Shown: piece after piece, positions 17,739-30,300 of the stretch
How positions within the stretch are numbered: the stretch's first letter is position 1
Layout of the letters: each line of letters begins with the position of its first letter
The notes under the pieces: generated by a model
Seen by the model: only the letters and a program-made list of their open reading frames with translations
Told to the model about the DNA's origin: nothing
Databases searched by the model: none
Position numbers and translations under genes: made by a program
From: Macrostomum lignano
Taxonomy: Eukaryota
Direction of reading: 5' to 3'
Assembly: GCA_002269645.1 (NCBI GenBank)
Contig: NIVC01001474.1
Coordinates: forward strand, 165,807 to 229,806
DNA: 64,000 nucleotides

Positions 17739-18953
17739 TCAAACAATCAATCTATCAAAAAACAGATCAATCCATCGATCAATCTCACTGTCGCACTCTC
17801 CGCCGCTATTATCCAACTCCGAGTCCCACCGCTCCCAGGAGTCCAGTGCGCACTCGGACTCCGCATCGTCAACCCCGGGAACGAAGGCCCAGCCGCGCCG
17901 GGTTCGAGTCTCGTCTGAGGCCCGCAGGCGGAGCAGGTGAACCCGGCCTGGGTAGGCGGACTGGAGTGACAGATCAGGGAGACTGAGGTCATCCTTCACA
18001 AGCTCTAATTATCACTTTAGTAATGAAAATGACTTATAGCAATCAAAATATCCTTAGCAACTAGGAATTATCGTAACAACTGGGAATAACCCTAGCAACC
18101 AGGAATAGACATTGCAACCCCTGAATATCCCTAGCAAACCGGAAATACACTAGCAACCGGGAGTAACCCTAGCAACCGGGAAATAGCCATAGCAACTGGG
18201 AATAACCCTAGCAACCGGGAATAACCTTAGCAACCGGGAATAACCCTAGCAACCGTAAATAACCCAGCAACCAGGAATAACCCTAGCAACCGAGAATAAC
18301 CCTAGCAACCGGGAATGACGCTAGCAACCGGGAATAACTTTAGCAACCGGGAATAGCCATAGAAACCGGGAATGACCCTAGCAACCGGGAATAGCCATAG
18401 AAACCGGGAATGACCCTAGCAACCGGGAATAGCCAGAGCAACCGGGAATAACTCTAGCAACCGGGTATAACATTAGCTACAAAGAAAAGAATCGCTACTT
18501 TGGAAAAAAGCAAATCCTTATCAAACCCTAGAAACCGTAGACACACTCAAAAACAGTCAGTCAGGACAATACCCTCACCAGAAAGTATTGGATATCGCTA
18601 GGCCTGCGTACATCTGACACCACCCAGAGCCCGTCAGGAGGCGGTTGCGCCATCTGCACCGCCAGCCGGCAGAAGCAGCCAGGATCGGCAGCTCGCAGCC
18701 GCTCACCCCAGGCGATCATGTCAGCCCTGAAGGCCTCCTTGTACTCTGTGGAATCCGCCAGTCGGTCTGCATCGAGTTGGTGCAGCCTGGCGTACTCCGC
18801 CTTCAGCGGCTGGCTGACTCGAACGCAAGCGGCTGGAAAGTTGCGCTCAGCCGCGGCGGCTAATATTCGAGAGGTCACGTGATCTTTGCCGGATTTGCGC
18901 TTGCCGGAGATCAGCAGCAGCTGGCGAGGCTTGGGACTGCAGTTTGAGGCCGA
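17739..18953 (-). CDS. PMVK: Phosphomevalonate kinase (animal type), 2 exons; start Met not genomically encoded
   Basis: Exons 18953-18579 and 17960-17739 (phase 0, gtgagg...tccag). [54 protein letters not shown]. No in-frame ATG before the P-loop. Confidence 0.92.
18050..18480. repeat. 19-20-bp minisatellite with CCCTAGCAAC core (PMVK intron)
   Basis: Unit aaccctagcaaccgggaat. Confidence 0.9.
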
Positions 18954-18972
18954 CTGCGGTTGAGATGAAAGC
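18954..18972 (-). promoter_or_regulatory. Putative trans-splice acceptor of PMVK
   Basis: Minus strand ...gctttcatctcaaccgcag|TCG GCC TCA AAC; pyrimidine tract plus CAG in phase 0 with the ORF. Confidence 0.6.
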
Positions 18973-20324: not shown

Positions 20325-20815
20325 AATCCTCAATAGTTCACAACCACAATGTTCACAATCCCCAATAGTTCACAACCACAATGTTCACAATCCCCAATAG
20401 TTCACAATCACGAATAGTTCACAATCACGAATAGTTCACAATCCCCAATAGTTCACAATCCCCAATAGTTGACAATCCCCAATAGTTCACAATCCCCAAT
20501 AGTTCACAATCCCCAATAGTTCACAATCCCCAATAGTTCACAATCCCCAATAATTCACAATCCCCAATAGTTCACAATCCCCAATAGTTCACAATCCCCA
20601 ATAGTTGACAATCCCCAATAGTTTACAAACCCAAATAGTTCACCATCCCTAATAGTTCACAATCCCAAATAGTTCACAATCCCGAATAGTTCACAATCCC
20701 CAATAGTTCACAATCCCGAATAGTTCACAATCCCTAATAGTTCACAAAAATACAATAGTTCACAATTCAGAATAGTTCACAATCTTGAATAGTTCACAAT
20801 CCCCAATAGATCACA
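20325..20815. repeat. 17-bp minisatellite
   Basis: Unit aatagttcacaatcccc. Confidence 0.92.
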
Positions 20816-22070
20816 AAAGGTTTCATAAACGTGACTAATATTCCGAATTATAGTCTGTGAACTAACTCCATAAAAATTGGTAAAGTTTAAGCAGCCCATA
20901 TTCTGTGTTTGAGGTGTCGAAAAGTTGAATTTTATTTGATTATAATGTCAACCTTATCAACTATATTTAGGCTAACGCAAGGAATGAAAACGAACACCCT
21001 AGCGGACTGCAAGCCGAAACAAAACTAAGTGCTTCTCCAACGAAAACAACAAGTTTACAAGATTAAAAACCTGCTAAAAACGCCCTGTTTATAAATTAGA
21101 CTAACTGGATATTTTCTCTACACAAAATAAACAAAAGTCTGGCATGCATTCTACTTAATGAGCTGGTTTTGTTGGCCAAGAATTGCCAAGAGCCTGGCTC
21201 AAGGATTGCATAGAAATGATCAAGGTTGTTTTCTTAAAACTGTGTATGAGTGCTGTGCCTTCAGTGAATTTCCGTCAGTAGCTGGCTGTGAGCTTGAAGA
21301 AAAGCTACAGAATTACACAATTTTTTAATCATACTGCCAGTTTTTTAAATAAAATTTAATGAATGAATTCGCCAACAAGTTGCACAACTCGGAAGCTTTT
21401 GTTAGCTTCGGGACAATCTGCGAAAATTTATATTATTTAGCATAGCAAATATTAATTAACAAATTAATACACACGGTAAAATTTATCCATAAAAACTGCT
21501 TGCAAAACAACTGATGCTAAAACTCTCCCTTAGTGATTTTTAAAAAAATTCGATATGTTTGCATTCATGCTTAAACCAGATTAAAGAGAAGGCACAAATT
21601 CTTTTGGAGCCAAATATTTGTAGCATAACAGGTAGAAAAAGCTGAAAAAGTGATGGTAAAACAGGGGTAAAATGCTTACTAAATAAATAATGATGTACAA
21701 TATTAGTAGCAATATATAATAAGTAATAAAGGTGAATAATCAGTTGTCGGTGTCAAAATTTCGCAACTAAGTATTAATAAGTCATGAATCATGCAATTAA
21801 AAAATCTGGCCAAAAAACGGAGCACACAATATTGATTTTATTGACTTATTCCAAAGCTAAAATATAGAAAAAGAGCGTCATAAAAAATTCGATGCACATA
21901 CACCTGTTGTTTCACTGCAAACAATAATACTGATATGATAGGATAAAGACTTCATGCAAATACCAGAACAAGGACTACTGACATTGCAAATAACAATTCT
22001 TTTAGCTGAGATGGCATTAAAAACGCACAGATGGCATAGAAGTTGATTGTCAATCCATCACAACCAGCAT

Positions 22071-24041
22071 TCAGTCAGTCCCGCCGGTGTCCAAGCAGCC
22101 CCGCGCGCTCCACACCATCTTGACGCACTCTTCGGCGTCGTTAAACCACCGATGCGGCCGTCTGACACGACGCTGCAGCAGGCGGATTAGCGACAACAGT
22201 CGGGCCTCGAAACGCGAGTTCAGCTCGTTAGCTAAGAGTGGCGCGGAAGTGGAGAATGAGGACACGAACTCGGCTACAACCCCGACAGTTGATTCCACCT
22301 CGGCTTTGATTGTTGGATCGACAACAAAATTGGCAACATCGTCTAAATTGTTTTTATCGGCACCCTCGACTTCGCTCTTATCGTCCTTAGCAATCGCATC
22401 AATCCATCTAGGCTCCAACGCCAACAAGCCATCATACAGTGGCCACTCATTGGTGCAAGCAACACAGTCGCAGTCGAACAAATACTGAGCCGCAAGACTT
22501 TCTTGACGCTGCTGTTTCGGATGCACAGCCCAATGCAAACCGTAGTTGTCAAGGAGCTCCTCGCCTTTAGCAATCGGTCGGAGAGCTCGAATCTCCAGTC
22601 TCAAACCGGGACAAGTGACTCGCGATACATTCGGATCGCAAGAATGATTAATTAAACTAGCCGTTGGATACACAGCCGACCCAATATCTCTGATAGTCAG
22701 TGCAGAAATATCCACTGAGCTGCCATTGTCAGTACTACTACTAGTAGTCAGCCTACTTGGCGGAGCGGACAATGCAGTTACATCGTGAGCATTGCACGGC
22801 ACCAGCATCAGATGGCGCAGCAGTGCTGCAACAAGTGGGGCGGCTACATCTAGCTGAGAATTTGACTCAGACTCGACACTGAGCAGCAGAGCCATCTGGC
22901 AGGCAACGGCGACTCGCTGAGCCAAATCGCGACTCTCTCGCTGTCGTTCTCCAGCTACCAAAGCCAGCACCGATTGATAATCGCCAGCAGATCCGAATAC
23001 CGATTCGAAATCTTTGAAATTCTTCGCCTTAGCAACAGCTTGAGCAGCGGAAACCGGACCGCCAGCAGCGATCACGGTGGCGAAAGCGAGCCGACCAATG
23101 CTCGCATTGAATGCGGAGTCCAACCAGCCAGCCAGCCAGCCGCATTCCACCCTGTGGACCGGGTCGTTATCCCGACAAGTCTCCGAGCAGAAGCCAACAA
23201 CTGAGCAGTCGCTACAGGGCAGCAACCGTTGGCAAGGTGCCAAGCAGGCTGAGCAGTGACTATCGCGAAGATTTGACAGTAGAATGGCGCTGAAAGCCGG
23301 CTCAGAGACCAACAGGTCTCCAACATCGACGTCTTCAAGAGCAACAAGACAGCGACCGCGACTCTCGTCTGCCAGAGCGAGCTGCAACTTGGCGCTGGCG
23401 TGCGGCAGCTGGGGATTAAAATCCCGCAACAACGATTGAGATGCTGCTGCTGGCTGGGAAACACTTGAGGATTTCGACACTGACATTCTCTTCTGACAGT
23501 CAGCGATGCGACCTGTCAGCTTACCGGCCCGCTCGTCGCCATACGGCAACCGTAGAGCCGCTTCAGCATCGGCTATGGCTTCCGCATAGCAACCGAGACG
23601 TTTGAACACCAGCGAACGGTTGGCAAAAGCCACGGCAAGATCCGAGCTACCTGGCTGGGCGTGCCGGATGCATTCAGAAAATCGTAGCGCCGCTAAACGC
23701 AGCAGGCCGCAGTCGAGGGCTTCCAGACCGGCCGAACGAGCTTCCGCTAGGCGAGCTGGACTCTTGGCGTCGCTAGGCAACGGACGCTGATGCTTTGTCC
23801 AGACGGTGGCACTTCTGGCAGCATAGTTAGACCAATCAATCGAGGCAAGCACTCGTTCGGCAAGACGAAGTTCGAATTCCATGGATGCCGTGGAATCGTT
23901 GAGAATATTGGTTGCTTCGTTTGAGCCTAGCCAGTCAAGAGCTGCGGCTGCAGCTTTAGTACCGAGCGACTTCATTGACTGCAGCATGCTGCTGCTCTTG
24001 ACTGGGGATGCCATTTGTCTGTTAGAGCTCTCGACTGGCAT
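22071..24041 (-). CDS. SMYD4: SET and MYND domain protein, SMYD4-like, intronless (~650 aa; start at 24041 or 24014)
   Basis: TPR-like region (LAVAFANRSLVFKRLGCYAEAIADA), split SET (RGRCLVALEDVDVGDLL...LINHSCDPN...GEELLDNY), MYND finger (CSACL...CSDC...FCSETC...HRVEC), post-SET FDCDCVAC. The ORF track start at 24185 is a non-ATG codon. Confidence 0.85.
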   Translation of the reverse strand: MPVESSNRQMASPVKSSSMLQSMKSLGTKAAAAALDWLGSNEATNILNDSTASMEFELRLAERVLASIDWSNYAARSATVWTKHQRPLPSDAKSPARLAEARSAGLEALDCGLLRLAALRFSECIRHAQPGSSDLAVAFANRSLVFKRLGCYAEAIADAEAALRLPYGDERAGKLTGRIADCQKRMSVSKSSSVSQPAAASQSLLRDFNPQLPHASAKLQLALADESRGRCLVALEDVDVGDLLVSEPAFSAILLSNLRDSHCSACLAPCQRLLPCSDCSVVGFCSETCRDNDPVHRVECGWLAGWLDSAFNASIGRLAFATVIAAGGPVSAAQAVAKAKNFKDFESVFGSAGDYQSVLALVAGERQRESRDLAQRVAVACQMALLLSVESESNSQLDVAAPLVAALLRHLMLVPCNAHDVTALSAPPSRLTTSSSTDNGSSVDISALTIRDIGSAVYPTASLINHSCDPNVSRVTCPGLRLEIRALRPIAKGEELLDNYGLHWAVHPKQQRQESLAAQYLFDCDCVACTNEWPLYDGLLALEPRWIDAIAKDDKSEVEGADKNNLDDVANFVVDPTIKAEVESTVGVVAEFVSSFSTSAPLLANELNSRFEARLLSLIRLLQRRVRRPHRWFNDAEECVKMVWSARGCLDTGGTD

Positions 24042-24837
24042 CAGATAATGGGTTCGATGGGTTACAGGTGAATAAGGCGTGCTCTGTACGACGAGAGTAG
24101 AAGCACGAGTACCTAAGAAGTACCTAAGACGTACGATATTCTTACATCTGCGAGTCTGTGACGCATAGGGTTTTAGGTTCGTCACCGTTCGTGTTGCATC
24201 TATGGGGTGGCGTTGTATTTAAATGGTGTTATTTTGTATCTATGGCTTAGTGTTGTATTGTATCTAGATAATGTGATGTATCTATATCATGTATGTTGTA
24301 TCTATGGTGTGTTGTATATGTAGGGTAAGTGGGGCCTAGAGTCCTATCTGCATTGATTTCGACGTTGTGAGTCTGTTTCACTGAGCTGCAATAAATAATA
24401 TCATGGCATAAAATGAAAATGATGTAGCAATGCATCAAATTATTCCTACTTAAGCTACTTAAAGTAGGATAGTAGGCATTTTATTTTATATTACTTTATA
24501 TTACTATATTACTATATTATATTACTTTAAAATATAATAAAACTAGGAAAAATAATAACCGAAACAGCTTAAAACTATCGGAGATTTTATACGTATAACA
24601 CAACAAATTTTTTTATAGAGAAAACTGATAATTGCATAGATTTGTATAACACTATGACATGCACGAAAAGCTAAAAACACACGCATTTGGTAACTGATTA
24701 ACAGACTACTTGGTTTGTAAGTTAAATACTCGTACGAGCGTATTTGTACAAAACATAAATAAACCAAAACCAAGCGATATTTATAAATGCGAAAATGTCT
24801 ATGTTTGAACGTTCAAATGGTACAAGAGAAATGTAAG

Positions 24838-26145
24838 CTAAGCAAGCTTTGAACGTTTAGTCGCGGTGGCAGAGTTGGACTCATCTGCGTTCGAATCTTC
24901 CAGTTTCTTTTTCATATCGGTGACAACTTCATCTTTGATTTTGATACTTTGATTTGAACTCTCCGACGAGGTGCGTTGAGCACTTTCCAAAGTGCGCTCT
25001 GTACTTTCAGAAATGGGTTCCAAAGTGCGCTCTGTACTTTTAGAAATGCGTTCCAAAGTGCGCTCTGTACTTTCCGAAGTACAATGTGCACTTTCCGAAG
25101 TGCATTTTGAACTTTCCAAAGTGCGTTCTGTACTTGGAATTTCGCATTTAGCTTCTTTTTGAGCTTCTCTATCGATTTTTCGATTCTGATCAGACTCGGC
25201 GAATCGCCATGGAAACCGTTCACTCTTTCGCGTATGCTTAGAAAACAGTCTCAACGGTTGCAGGCGAAGCAACGGCCTCAGCATCTCTTCGGCATCAATG
25301 CCGAGCAGTTCCCGACAGACCAACGACATGACAAGATCGCAGCGAGCATTTATACGCAGATAACTCTGAGCATCTTTCTTTGTAGACTGCAGATTAACAA
25401 TGACTAATTTGCCGCCCATTGTGGGCAGATCGGCGGCCGGCACAATCTGCAAACTGGTGCCCAGAGTCAGATTAACGGTAGCCCGACTGGAATGCTCGCG
25501 AGCTCGACGAAGATCTGCCTGTGGCAGCTGATGCTCCCAGTCTAGCACCGTGTCCAGCATCTGGCCGCCGCAGATGCCGTCAACGCTGTCACCAGCATCG
25601 CCACCGGCTTTGACGGATTTCTTTCTGCCTCGCCTAGCCGGAGCTCCGCACCGCCTCCCGGTGGCTTTCTGACCGACCGTCTCCACCGGTTGGTCTCTCG
25701 CCCGGTGCAAGCCGCACCGGCTGCACCGCTCAACAAACATATCGCCATGCAAAATCGACAACCGATTGCGAGGAAATCCAGACCGAAGGTGCAAACCGTC
25801 AACATTCTGCGTCACCAGGTAGTGAACGAATCCGGCCGTTTCCAAGGCAACCAGAGCGGCGTGAGTAAGTGTTGGTTGAGCCTCTTCAAACTTGGCCCCG
25901 GCTTCAACTGTTCGACCTTCGCGTTCCAGAGTCCAGACGCCGTTGGGGCCGCGGAAATCCGGGATTCCGGCCGAGGTGCTGACGCCAGCTCCCGTGTGGA
26001 CAACGACTCGAGCTCCGGGCTGTCGAATCAGGCCCACCAGCTGACGAGCTTTCAACTCCCAATCGGCTTGGGACTCGTGAGTTTCGGGCAGGCCCAGAGT
26101 GCCTTTGTCCGAGTATTCGGACAGCCCGGCCGAGTAGTTGGCCGA
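24838..26145 (-). CDS. SIRT6: NAD-dependent deacylase sirtuin-6, intronless; start Met not genomically encoded
   Basis: SANYSAGLSEYSDKG matches the SIRT6 N-terminus MSVNYAAGLSPYADKG; HTGAGVSTSAGIPDFRGPNGVWT, TQNVDGLH, LHGDMFVERCSRC, LDWE, LGTSLQI, IVNLQ. Confidence 0.93.
   Translation of the reverse strand, partial: SANYSAGLSEYSDKGTLGLPETHESQADWELKARQLVGLIRQPGARVVVHTGAGVSTSAGIPDFRGPNGVWTLEREGRTVEAGAKFEEAQPTLTHAALVALETAGFVHYLVTQNVDGLHLRSGFPRNRLSILHGDMFVERCSRCGLHRARDQPVETVGQKATGRRCGAPARRGRKKSVKAGGDAGDSVDGICGGQMLDTVLDWEHQLPQADLRRAREHSSRATVNLTLGTSLQIVPAADLPTMGGKLVIVNLQSTKKDAQSYLRINARCDLVMSLVCRELLGIDAEEMLRPLLRLQPLRLFSKHTRKSERFPWRFAESDQNRKIDREAQKEAKCEIPSTERTLESSKCTSESAHCTSESTERTLERISKSTERTLEPISESTERTLESAQRTSSESSNQSIKIKDEVVTDMKKKLEDSNADESNSATATKRSKLA
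24981..25137 (-). repeat. 33-bp coding minisatellite in the SIRT6 C-terminal tail
   Basis: ttccaaagtgcgctctgtactttcagaaatggg-type units encoding (S)TERTLE.. repeats. Confidence 0.8.
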
Positions 26146-26168
26146 CTGGAGGTGGGAGGGAGGAGATG
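26146..26168 (-). promoter_or_regulatory. Putative trans-splice acceptor of SIRT6
   Basis: Minus strand catctcctccctcccacctccag|TCG GCC AAC TAC; the CAG occupies the Met1 codon position. Confidence 0.75.
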
Positions 26169-26254
26169 AACTGTTGGTGTGTTGCCGTACCGACTAATGT
26201 TTTTCTATAACGTTATGGACCTTAATCATCTCTATTCTCTCTAAAAAATCCCTG

Positions 26255-27115
26255 CCATCTCTAAACCCCCTTAATCTCATTTATCTGTTCTCTCCCCCAA
26301 TCACAGCCATCTCTAATCCCCCTCAATCCCATTTATCTCTGTTCTCTCCCCCAATCACAGCCATCTCTAATCCCCCTCAATCCCATTTATCTCTGTTCTC
26401 TCCCCCAATCACAGCCATCTCTAATCCCCCTTAATCTCATTTATCTGTTCTCTCCCCCAATCACAGCCATCTCTAATCCCCCTCAATCTCATTTATCTGT
26501 TCTCTCCCCCAATCACAGCCATCTCTAATCCCCATTAATCCCATTTATCTCTGTTCTCTACCCCAATCACAGCCATCTCTAATCCCCCTCAATCTCATTT
26601 ATCTCTGTTCTCTCCCCCAATCACAGCCATCTCTAATCCCCCTCAATCCCATTTATCTCTGTTCTCTCCCCCAATCACAGCCATCTCTAATCCCCCTCAA
26701 TCTCATTTATCTCTGTTCTCTACCCCAATCACAGCCATCTCTAATCCCCCTCAATCTCATTTATCTCTGTTCTCTACCCCAATCACAGCCATTTCTAATC
26801 CCCCTTAATCCCATTTATCTCTGTTCTCTGCCCCAATCACAGCCATATCTAATCTCCCTTAATCTCATATATCTCTGTTCTCTACCCCAATCACAGCCAT
26901 ATCTAATCCCCCTTAATCTCATTATCTCTGTTCTACCCCAATCCCAGCCATCTCTAATCTCCCTTAATCTCATTTATCTCTGTTCTCTCCCCCAATCACA
27001 GCCATCTCTAGATCTTAATCTCAATTAATCTCAATTCTCTAAGAATCCCAGCCATTTCTAATCTCCAACCCAGTCTCAATTCATTTCTATTACCTTCCCT
27101 AATCACAGTCATCTC
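26255..27115. repeat. ~54-bp minisatellite between the DGAT1-like gene and SIRT6
   Basis: Unit atctctaatccccctcaatctcatttatctctgttctctcccccaatcacagcc. Confidence 0.93.
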
Positions 27116-27391
27116 TAGACTCACTCAGTCTACCTCAAATCTATTCTCTCCTGAAATCTAACATGGACTTTCATTTTAGAATCCAAGACACAATAATAGT
27201 ACAAAAAAGTATACAGAAAGTCTGTATATGGATAGGAAAACAAAAGAAATGTTTATTGCCCCAACAGCATTGTTTATTTATAGAATTTTAATCAACAAAA
27301 TTTAAAGAGTTAACAACAGAAAATTAGATTGCTAATATTATGTCAATCGTTGCAAATATCTACACAGAAAACGACATTAGTCAGTTTAATG

Positions 27392-30300
27392 TCAAAGATA
27401 GTACTGACAGTAGTCAGCATAGGCCAGTCTAGCTAGCACTGGCAGGCCAAGCACAAGGCAGAGCCAAACGAAAGCATTGTTGCCGAATCTGATGCAGGCG
27501 GCATCCAGAATGGGCAGCACGATGGCCACAGTGAGCAGAGGCCACGGCTGGGGCGATCGAAGCACTGCGGACACAACCAGCTGGGCCAGGAGAGCCCAGG
27601 CTAGACTAGGCAGATTGAATTCCGCTGCGGATGGCCACACAGACGTCAGCAGGTTGGTCAGGCTTGAAGCATTCCACCAGAGTCGCTTGGTTTGAGTTAG
27701 TTTGCTACTGATAGTAGTGTCCTCAGCTGAGGATTTCTGCTGTTGAAATCATTTGTTTAGGTGGAAAATGAGTTTTTTTTACGTTTCTTTAAGTGGAATT
27801 TTTTAATTTCAATAATTAACATAGAAAGGCATTTCCTAAATAACTTTTACAGGCGATTCCTAAATGACGTCAAAGGGCGATTCCAAAATAACTTCAAAGG
27901 GCGATTCCAAAATAACTTCAAAGGGCGATTCCTAAATAACTTCAATGGCCGATTTCTAAATAACTTCAATGGCCGATTTCTAAATAACTTCAAAAGGTGA
28001 TTCCTGAAAAACTTCAAAGGGCGATTCCTAAATAACTTCAAAAGGTGATTCTTAAATAACTTCAAAAGGTGATTCCTAAATAACTTCAAAAGGTGATTCT
28101 TAAATAACTTCAAAGGGCGATTCCTAAATAACTTCAAAGGGCGATTCCTAAATAACTTCAAAAGGTGATTCCTGAAAAACTTCAAAGGGCGATTCCTAAA
28201 TAACTTCAAAAGGTGATTCCTGAAAAACTTCAAAGGGCGATTCCTAAATAACTTCAAAGGGTGATTCCTAAATAACTTCAAAGGGCGATTCCTAAATAAC
28301 TTCAAAGGGTGATTCCTAAATAACTTCAAAGGGCGATTCCTAAATAACTTCAAAGGGCGATTTCTAAATAACTTCAAAGGGCGATTCCTAAATAACTTCA
28401 AAGGGTGATACCTAAATAACTTCAAAGGGCGATTCCTAAATAACTTCAAAGGGTGATACCTAAATAACTTCAAAGGGTGATTCCTGAAAAACTTCAAAGG
28501 GCGATTCCTAAATAACTTCAAAAGGTGATTCCTAAATAACTTCAAAGGGTGATTCTTAAATAACTTCAAAGGGTGATTCCTAAAAATCTTAAAAGCTTAC
28601 ACTAAACTTAGAAACGAACAATGAAAAGCTAAAAATAAAGAAATAGCACTTACAAAGTCACTGCCAGACTGAAAGCAGAAATCCAACAGTTTCAGAATCC
28701 GATCCATTGCCGCTCCTGCAGCCAAGCAGACGGCAATAACAGGAGGCGACAGGCGCAGTTGCCTCTCAACCATCACCAGCCAGCAGGGCGCATTGTACTC
28801 GTAGCTATTAGCAGCTGGATCAGATGAGGCGGCAGCTAGAGAAGGCATTAACCACTGCTGAGTCAGAGCCACTATAGCAACTAATAGTCCCGCTAGTTGA
28901 GCAAAGCCAATTAGCAGCATTCTGTTGACACTGACAACCCGAAGTTGAACGAGTTGCCTGGCAATGCGCTGACGCTGCAGGTGCAAATTGGTCAGCTTGA
29001 GGAACAGAGCCACACTGATTGACATTCCTGCGAAGCCGACAACTGTTGAAGCGGGGATAGCGAGACGGAGGGTTATATTACACCTGAGTTCATGGGGTGC
29101 ATCAACACACCTGGGTTTATATGAGGTGCATTAACACACCTGGGTTTTATATGGGGTGCATTAACACACCTGGGTTTTATGGGGTGCATTAACACACCTG
29201 GGTTTTATATGGGGTGCATTAACACACCTGGGTTTTATATGGGGTGCATTAACACACCTGGGTTTTATATGGGGTGCATTAACACACCTGGGTTTTATAT
29301 GGGGTGCATTAACACACTTGGGTTTTATATGGGGTGCATTAACACACTTGGGTTTTATATGGGGTGCATTAACACACCTGGGTTTTATATGGGGTGCATT
29401 AACACACTTGGGTTTTATATGGGGTGCATTAACACACCTGGGTTTTATATGGGGTGCATTAACACACCTGGGTTTTATATGGGGTGCATTAACACACCTG
29501 GGTTTTATATGGGGTGCATTAACACACCTGGGTTTTATATGGGGTGCATTAACGCACCTGGGTTTCATGGGGTGCATTAACACACCTGGGTTTATATCGG
29601 GTGCATTAACGCACCTGGGTTTTATATAACACACCTGGGTTTTAAGGGGTGCATTAACGCACCTGGGTTTATATGGGGTGCATTAACGCACCTGGGTTTT
29701 AAGGGGTGCATTAACGCACCTGGGTTTATATGGGGTGCATTAACACACCTGGGTTTTATAAGGGGTACATTAACGCACCTAGGTTTTATAAAACACACCT
29801 GGGTTTTAAGGGTTTTAAGGAGTGCATTAACACACCAGGGTTTTAAGGGTACAGCGAAGTATTTCAAAAAAGCTTTCAATCAAGGTATTCAAGGCTGCTC
29901 ATAACACAGTACTCAACCCAAGTTTAAAGGTAATAGGAAATACTCACTGGGCGAAGGCCTAGACCACAGCACAATGCAAGCAGGAGCCACCAGAAGCAGA
30001 CAGACACTGCTGGCCACTCCGAGCCTCCGATAGCCAGAAGAAGCGGCAAAAGCAGACGCATTCAGAGCGGCAAAAGCAACGCAGACCAGGCCGGCAATGC
30101 AGGCTGGACCGCCTCCAACAGCCAGGCAGCTAAGAGGATTTCCAGCCAGAGGGCCGTATCTTAGATGGGACTCTAACAGACAGCGAGCGATGCACATCGA
30201 TAGAAGGATTAGCAATGGGCTTAGTAGGCCTCTGAAAGCGCCTCTGCTTTGGCCTAATTGGCCTGGCCGACTTAGCAGACTGTCTGCTGGACTGTGGATC

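Follow-up and report, generated by a model that had tools for sequence, protein, structure and literature searches.

We analysed a 64,000-nucleotide stretch of the genome of the flatworm Macrostomum lignano (positions 165,807 to 229,806 of contig NIVC01001474.1, assembly Mlig_3_7, GCA_002269645.1; hereafter the window, whose own coordinates are used throughout). On its minus strand lies a SIRT6 gene without a start codon of its own, in which a splice acceptor occupies the position of the ATG. We consider it quite probable that translation of this gene begins on the AUG at the end of the spliced leader, brought in by trans-splicing at 26146/26145 (the slash marks the junction here and below), and that the gene is probably transcribed within a multi-gene unit. 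From the genomic sequence we infer both steps, the joining of the leader at 26145 and the start of ribosomes on its AUG, as the most likely course of events. If so, the window copy would be unable to make functional SIRT6 without trans-splicing.

A SIRT6 gene short of its first codon

The predicted protein matches human SIRT6 (PDB 3K35) with E=3.2e-77 over residues 1-289, its first residue (Ser) standing opposite residue 2 of the human chain, as against E=5e-42 for SIRT7 and 1e-24 or weaker for the other sirtuins. Consistently, Pfam finds the Sir2 domain (PF02146), the best-scoring database matches bear the name SIRT6 across Metazoa, the segment around the catalytic His (LHGDMFVERCSRC) aligns to LHGNMFVEECAKC of 3K35, and the four zinc-binding cysteines are kept relative to that structure, those of TGRRC and CGGQ being aligned. 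The protein also has two peculiarities, both read on the minus strand: a zinc-binding module longer than that of human SIRT6 by an insertion of ~15 residues (KKSVKAGGDAGDSVDGI; about 25560-25640), and a C-terminal tail (25000-25135) made of a tandem peptide repeat with STERTLE and SKCTSESAHCTSES units, the underlying DNA having periods of 21 and 33.

The amino terminus was compared with those of 24 orthologues from a sponge, cnidarian-grade animals, molluscs, echinoderms, vertebrates, cestodes and trematodes. Met stands directly before the residue aligned to the window Ser in 24 of the 24, and is residue 1 in 23 of them. The window gene is thus short by exactly one codon, that of the initiator.

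The reading frame of SIRT6 is unbroken over 435 codons, from 26145 to a TAG at 24840-24838 on the minus strand. The start region reads ...ttcatctcctccctcccacctccag, followed by TCG GCC AAC TAC TCG GCC GGG CTG, and the codon at the expected position of the ATG is CAG (26148-26146). Upstream, the frame is closed by a TAG (26196-26194), and the 16 codons between this stop and the TCG, read by eye, include no ATG and no near-cognate start. Beyond the stop there is an in-frame ATG (26229-26227), overlooked in the initial annotation of this stretch; in the window copy it reads MIKVHNVIEKH* and is closed by the same TAG. Within the exon, no in-frame ATG occurs before codon 136 (25740), part of the segment HGDMFVERC, which lies 3' of the NAD-binding motif GAGVSTSAGIPDFRGP and adjoins the catalytic His. 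Because a start at Met136 would fall downstream of the NAD-binding motif, it cannot yield a functional enzyme. With codon 136 as its first in-frame ATG and the frame upstream closed by a stop, the predicted mature mRNA holds no usable genomic initiator.

The minus-strand sequence bears out what the initial annotation had reported here, namely a CAG in place of the ATG, an in-frame TAG with no ATG between it and the exon, and a next Met that lies inside the catalytic domain. Its broader statement that SIRT6 lacks Met1 holds strictly for the window copy alone; in the paralogous copies described below, an in-frame ATG upstream, in the outron (the sequence that trans-splicing takes away), is open into the gene.

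A splice acceptor in place of the start codon

The tract before the exon, ttcatctcctccctcccacctcc, has pyrimidines at 21 of 23 positions, its AG lies at 26147-26146, and the first base of the exon is 26145, as expected from the earlier proposal that an acceptor sits exactly at the position of Met1. Such tracts are rare: five of the 3,957 AGs on the window minus strand (the top 0.13%) have at least 20 pyrimidines among the 23 upstream bases, and the SIRT6 acceptor is among them. Its placement is precise, at codon 2 of SIRT6 and in phase 0. The last six bases, CTCCAG, match the published trans-splice acceptor motif of M. lignano, [T/C]TNCAG (PMC8629364), and the position is identical in all four SIRT6 copies. 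The acceptor is more than a chance occurrence.

M. lignano has a single spliced leader, CGGTCTCTTACTGCGAAGACTCAATTTATTGCATG, followed by a GTAAG donor in the leader gene (PMC8629364); its 3' end is ...TTGCATG, and 30-39% of the genes are trans-spliced. A terminal AUG is common to the spliced leaders of all flatworms (PMC12582326), and the annotators of the Macrostomum genome noted the terminal ATG of the leader as a likely start codon (PMC10468722). When the end of the leader, ...GCATG, is placed before TCGGCCAAC, the result is AUG UCG GCC AAC UAC, which reads M-S-A-N-Y in frame, and the orthologues follow the pattern MS(V/A)NY. In the window itself, a search for a spliced-leader RNA gene with up to 3 mismatches allowed returned none.

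Under the mechanism that we propose, the SIRT6 pre-mRNA would be trans-spliced at the acceptor, the 35-nt leader (...TTATTGCATG) would be joined directly to TCG GCC AAC, and the 3'-terminal AUG of the leader would become codon 1, in frame, giving a product with the canonical SIRT6 N-terminus M-S-A-N-Y-S-A-G-L. The same event would discard an outron holding 38 ATGs and, in the window copy, the in-frame stop. The predicted junction is TTTATTGCATGTCGGCCAACTACTCGG in the window copy and TTTATTGCATGTCGGCTAACTACTCGG in the paralogues, the second codon of the exon being GCC in the former and GCT in the latter; the paralogue counterpart of the window junction ...TTGCATG/TCGGCCAAC would be .../TCGGCTAAC. 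With Ser behind it, the Met would be removed, and the predicted N-terminal peptide of mature SIRT6 is (Ac-)SANYSAGLSEYSDK.

Annotated paralogues begin at the acceptor

The assignment of the window to NIVC01001474.1 is borne out by its SET-domain protein, which matches a protein of that contig exactly, and by a 21.9-kb locus of the contig that agrees in every base with window 12071-34011. The SIRT6 copy of the window has diverged slightly from three others, with which it is collinear and which have GenBank coding sequences (CDSs) on contigs NIVC01003194, NIVC01005049 and NIVC01000305. The top database match of the window protein is BOX15_Mlig002561g2, a 'partial' hypothetical protein of M. lignano (93% identity, 100% coverage) that begins SANYSAGLSEYSDKG, without Met, and is encoded on three contigs of GCA_002269645.1. 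All three paralogue CDSs are 'partial' and single-exon, and they start exactly at the base after CTCCAG, with the Ser. These paralogues (L001-L003) have no TAG, and from an in-frame ATG 81 nt upstream the reading frame continues unbroken over 27 codons into SIRT6 (MIRVHNVIEKQSVRQHTNSSSPSSHLQ/SANY...). A model that included upstream sequence would give a longer open reading frame (ORF); since the CDSs start at the Ser although the frame is open to that ATG, the modelled mRNA begins at the acceptor. The Mlig_3_7 annotation comes from the TBONE pipeline, in which poly(A) sites and peaks of spliced-leader-trimmed reads mark where a transcriptional unit is divided into genes; TransDecoder then supplies the ORFs (PMC5730564). 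The names Mlig002561.g2 (SIRT6) and Mlig002561.g4 (a SET-domain gene) show that both were cut from one transcriptional unit on a paralogous contig.

Taken together, the acceptor, the frame, the restored MSANY and the CDS starts of the paralogues indirectly support the suggestion of the initial annotation that SIRT6 translation depends on trans-splicing, and its premise that flatworm leaders end in an AUG able to initiate agrees with the literature (PMC12582326; Cheng et al. 2006, as reported in PMC9851317).

Several observations weigh against leader-dependent initiation. The data consulted include no RNA read, cDNA or peptide that joins the leader to 26145. A search for a transcript-derived protein beginning MSANY..., made with the N-terminal 110 residues and with the exact sequences of M plus the window protein and M plus P0001, found none in a protein collection that includes no M. 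lignano transcript version of this gene. Annotated 5' ends are inexact: the CDS of the gene upstream of SIRT6 begins 0, 3 or 15 nt past its acceptor, depending on the copy, and the CDS of the SET gene starts just 3' of a genomic ATG. Annotation ends being imperfect in this way, we take the CDS starts of the SIRT6 paralogues as good but indirect evidence. In the paralogues, moreover, the ATG 81 nt upstream stays open in frame and could serve transcripts that are not spliced. Finally, the window SIRT6 (24838-26145; about 191,951 on the contig) has no GenBank CDS while neighbouring genes are annotated, and its expression is unproven.

Neither Mlig002561 nor Mlig029511 was found mentioned in the literature and supplements searched. 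A 'SIRT6' target of quantitative PCR in M. lignano (Mouton 2018, PMC5946080) was considered as the window gene and rejected, as the primers do not match the window and belong to another locus; that study thus gives no expression evidence for the window SIRT6.

Alternative explanations

The lack of a GenBank CDS among annotated neighbours on NIVC01001474.1 raises the question of whether the duplicate in the window has fallen silent or is decaying, its TTA/TAG and missing annotation reflecting lost expression, with SIRT6 made by the other copies alone, from any start that these may use. M. lignano does carry many recent duplicates. We nevertheless regard this as unlikely. The GenBank gene set was filtered on purpose, on grounds such as overlap with repeats (PMC5730564), which makes the missing CDS weak evidence. 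The 435-codon frame is intact and the acceptor conserved. Over the first 345 codons the window copy differs from the paralogues by 10 synonymous and 7 non-synonymous changes (synonymous divergence pS ~0.039, non-synonymous divergence pN ~0.009, pN/pS ~0.23; binomial P=0.003 against neutrality), and the copy looks constrained. The window protein has 435 residues against 456 in the paralogues, and the 21-residue gap corresponds to a repeat indel of 63 nt, which keeps the frame. Moreover, the annotated copies start at the Ser as well, so that the same mechanism would apply to this whole family of copies.

The window copy is set apart by a 3-nt insertion (ATT or TTA, 26195-26198), which creates the TAG and is absent from the three paralogous contigs. 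This difference could be thought of as a copy-specific translational switch, the window copy being strictly leader-dependent and the other three able to give an isoform longer by 27 residues when not trans-spliced. We think such a switch quite improbable; if it were true, the efficiency of trans-splicing would set the dose or isoform of SIRT6, a regulator of chromatin and longevity.

It is very unlikely that SIRT6 is ordinarily translated from the genomic ATG at 26229-26227 on an mRNA that is not trans-spliced, which would extend the protein by 27-28 residues and make the window TAG an assembly error. The frame open from the upstream ATG in L001-L003 would allow this, and indel errors do occur in long-read assemblies, but the TTA insertion is not an error of the homopolymer type. 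The extension would require the polypyrimidine tract to be translated, and the invariant N-terminus of SIRT6 would become internal. The 81-nt stretch in question, with 2 substitutions and the stop-creating indel, has diverged at about the synonymous rate, which is consistent with a non-coding outron, and the paralogue CDSs leave it out. That 27 codons should stay open has a chance probability of ~0.27, and the long unspliced leader would carry 38 ATGs.

We give equally little credence to a micro-exon, cis-spliced from upstream, as the source of the ATG. The most obvious candidate, ATGGCT/GTGATT, lies in the 54-bp tandem repeat occupying most of the spacer, and would yield M-A-S-A-N-Y. Counted over the spacer, 13 phase-0 ATGGCT/GT candidates occur, one per repeat unit in 13 units, and ~35% of M. 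lignano donors depart from GT[G/A]AG, which makes a weak donor not impossible. The number of candidates carries no weight, though: for an ATG placed at random, the odds of meeting an in-frame GT ahead of any stop are better than even. The donor GTGATT is off consensus, the repeat that bears it differs in copy number and sequence between the paralogues, the added Ala would break the invariant M-S terminus, and the read-guided annotation of the paralogues gives a single-exon CDS from the Ser with no 5' exon. A search of the SIRT6 spacer for a consensus cis donor supplying an in-frame ATG returned none; over its 1.25 kb a GT[AG]AG donor occurs once, at 27124, and a TGA stands before it in phase 0. 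The more restricted claim of the initial annotation, that the spacer has no ATG/GT micro-exon, is correct in that ATGGT occurs nowhere in 26146-27400.

Initiation at a non-AUG codon or at Met136 is hardly conceivable, given that nothing specific speaks for it, that no near-cognate codon lies between the TAG and the TCG, and that a product begun at Met136, past the NAD-binding motif and beside the catalytic His, would be inactive.

Gene neighbourhood

The features of the locus are collected in Table 1. The multi-gene unit in which SIRT6 is probably transcribed would also include the membrane-protein gene upstream and the SET and phosphomevalonate-kinase-like (PMVK) genes downstream. In M. lignano, operons have been defined by same-strand neighbours at a repeat-adjusted distance below 1 kb, with the downstream gene trans-spliced (Ustyantsev & Berezikov 2021). 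From the poly(A) signals of the upstream gene to the SIRT6 acceptor the distance is ~1.1 kb, and subtraction of the 896-bp tandem repeat leaves ~200 bp, below the 1-kb limit; the trans-splicing would be that predicted above.

Table 1 Features of the SIRT6 locus and its neighbours in the window.
Feature	Position	Strand	Remarks and basis
SIRT6-like coding exon	24841..26145	minus	single exon, 435 codons, first codon TCG (Ser); reading frame, structure alignment, Pfam PF02146, orthologue N-termini
SIRT6 stop codon TAG	24838..24840	minus	
First in-frame ATG of the SIRT6 exon	25738..25740	minus	codon 136
Putative spliced-leader trans-splice acceptor	26146..26170	minus	polypyrimidine tract + CAG; pyrimidine content, motif match, position kept in paralogues
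In-frame TAG upstream of SIRT6	26194..26196	minus	closes the upstream frame in the window copy
In-frame genomic ATG in the SIRT6 outron	26227..26229	minus	
54-bp tandem repeat	26247..27142	.	about 14-16 copies, most of the SIRT6 spacer/outron; Tandem Repeats Finder (TRF)
Two AATAAA signals past the stop of the upstream gene	27252..27278	minus	at 27278 and 27257
Upstream multi-pass membrane-protein gene	27392-30299	minus	stop TGA at 27392-27394
PMVK gene start	18714-18953	minus	acceptor CCGCAG at 18954-18959

The PMVK gene, 7 kb downstream of SIRT6 on the same strand, is likely a second gene of the cluster that depends on the leader AUG. Directly after its CCGCAG it starts at 18953 with TCG GCC TCA AAC (SASNCS..., SASNCSPKPRQLLLISGKRKSGKD); there is no in-frame ATG between the upstream stop and the acceptor, the first Met is near codon 79, and the match to the Pfam PMVK profile sets in at residue 15 of the protein. 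The GenBank CDS of PMVK on NIVC01001474.1 starts exactly at the acceptor. As PMVK shares the design of SIRT6, dependence on the leader AUG seems to apply to two genes in a row of four.

The SET-domain CDS between them ('partial', 646 aa; 24011-24014, minus; L004:14213-14216) starts at GCA, right after an in-frame genomic ATG (MASPVKSS...), and its annotated start thus drops a real ATG. The omission may be an artefact of leader trimming, ACAG/ACAAATG lying just upstream. We considered whether the Ser start of SIRT6 could reflect a general loss of first codons of the kind that SET suggests, and rejected this: the codon before the Ser of SIRT6 is CAG, and the open upstream frame of the paralogues would have entered the CDS. 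Between SIRT6 and SET, the paralogous locus L004:11692-13899 holds ~2 kb that are absent at window 24317-24515, a length difference that represents an insertion/deletion polymorphism between duplicates.

The membrane-protein gene upstream of SIRT6 has no match to a Pfam family at E<=0.1, which leaves the label 'DGAT1-like' given to it in the initial annotation unsupported. Its annotated CDS begins at an acceptor, GGCAG/ATC; a leader joined there would place its AUG in frame with the annotated 5'-partial ORF in two of the copies.

Tandem repeats fill spacers and introns throughout the cluster (26247-27142, 27833-28595, about 29160-29880 and about 20325-20816); the 54-bp and 24-bp arrays come from TRF, and the evidence for two further ones consists of repetitive ORFs and BLAST ladders. 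The 54-bp unit contains the sequence ATGGCT/GTGATT. Such repeat-filled spacers match the repeat inflation reported for operon spacers in M. lignano.

Discussion

The SIRT6 locus is a further instance of a mechanism already described. Use of the leader AUG as initiator Met in flatworms was reported by Cheng, Cohen, Ndegwa & Davis (2006, J Biol Chem 281:733), whose work is cited in PMC9851317 in connection with 'slORFs'. In Schistosoma mansoni, according to the same account, 28% of trans-spliced mRNAs carry the leader AUG in frame, and there are >40 cDNAs that cannot do without it. The window SIRT6 resembles those mRNAs in a leader that ends in AUG, an acceptor directly before codon 2 and an ORF without a start of its own. 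By contrast, M. lignano is a free-living macrostomid with another leader sequence, and the window SIRT6 is known from genomic sequence. A mechanism described in flatworms in 2006 can be regarded as ordinary for M. lignano.

A close precedent among sirtuins is SmSirt7 of S. mansoni, for which rapid amplification of cDNA ends traced the first 33 nt, and with them the initiating ATG, to the leader (Lancelot et al. 2013, PMC3772001). SmSirt7 is the other class-IV sirtuin, with a leader-supplied ATG, but it is the Sirt7 paralogue and belongs to a trematode; trans-splicing was not reported for SmSirt6, and the SIRT6 models of cestodes have an initial Met. The state of SIRT6 in M. lignano is for these reasons probably independent, and its leader dependence would be a lineage-specific case. 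A literature search for a paper on a leader-AUG start of this SIRT6 gene found none.

With the operon units described in M. lignano (Wudarski 2017; Ustyantsev & Berezikov 2021), the locus shares the common strand, the origin of Mlig002561.g2 and.g4 from one unit, the adjusted spacer of ~200 bp and the repeat-inflated intergenic space. It differs in that membership of the window genes is deduced from paralogues and distances.

If leader-dependent initiation holds, SIRT6 protein from the window copy would be obligatorily coupled to trans-splicing. Such coupling agrees with reports that trans-splicing is enriched in conserved genes and in stem-cell genes, and introduces no new principle. The main value of the case lies in the annotation of gene models in trans-splicing flatworms. 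Many GenBank proteins of M. lignano are 'partial' and lack Met1, and SIRT6 and PMVK suggest that at least some of them are complete once the leader AUG is added. Gene finders that require a genomic ATG would truncate such genes, as at Met136 of SIRT6, or miss them, and transgenes of such genes must retain the acceptor.

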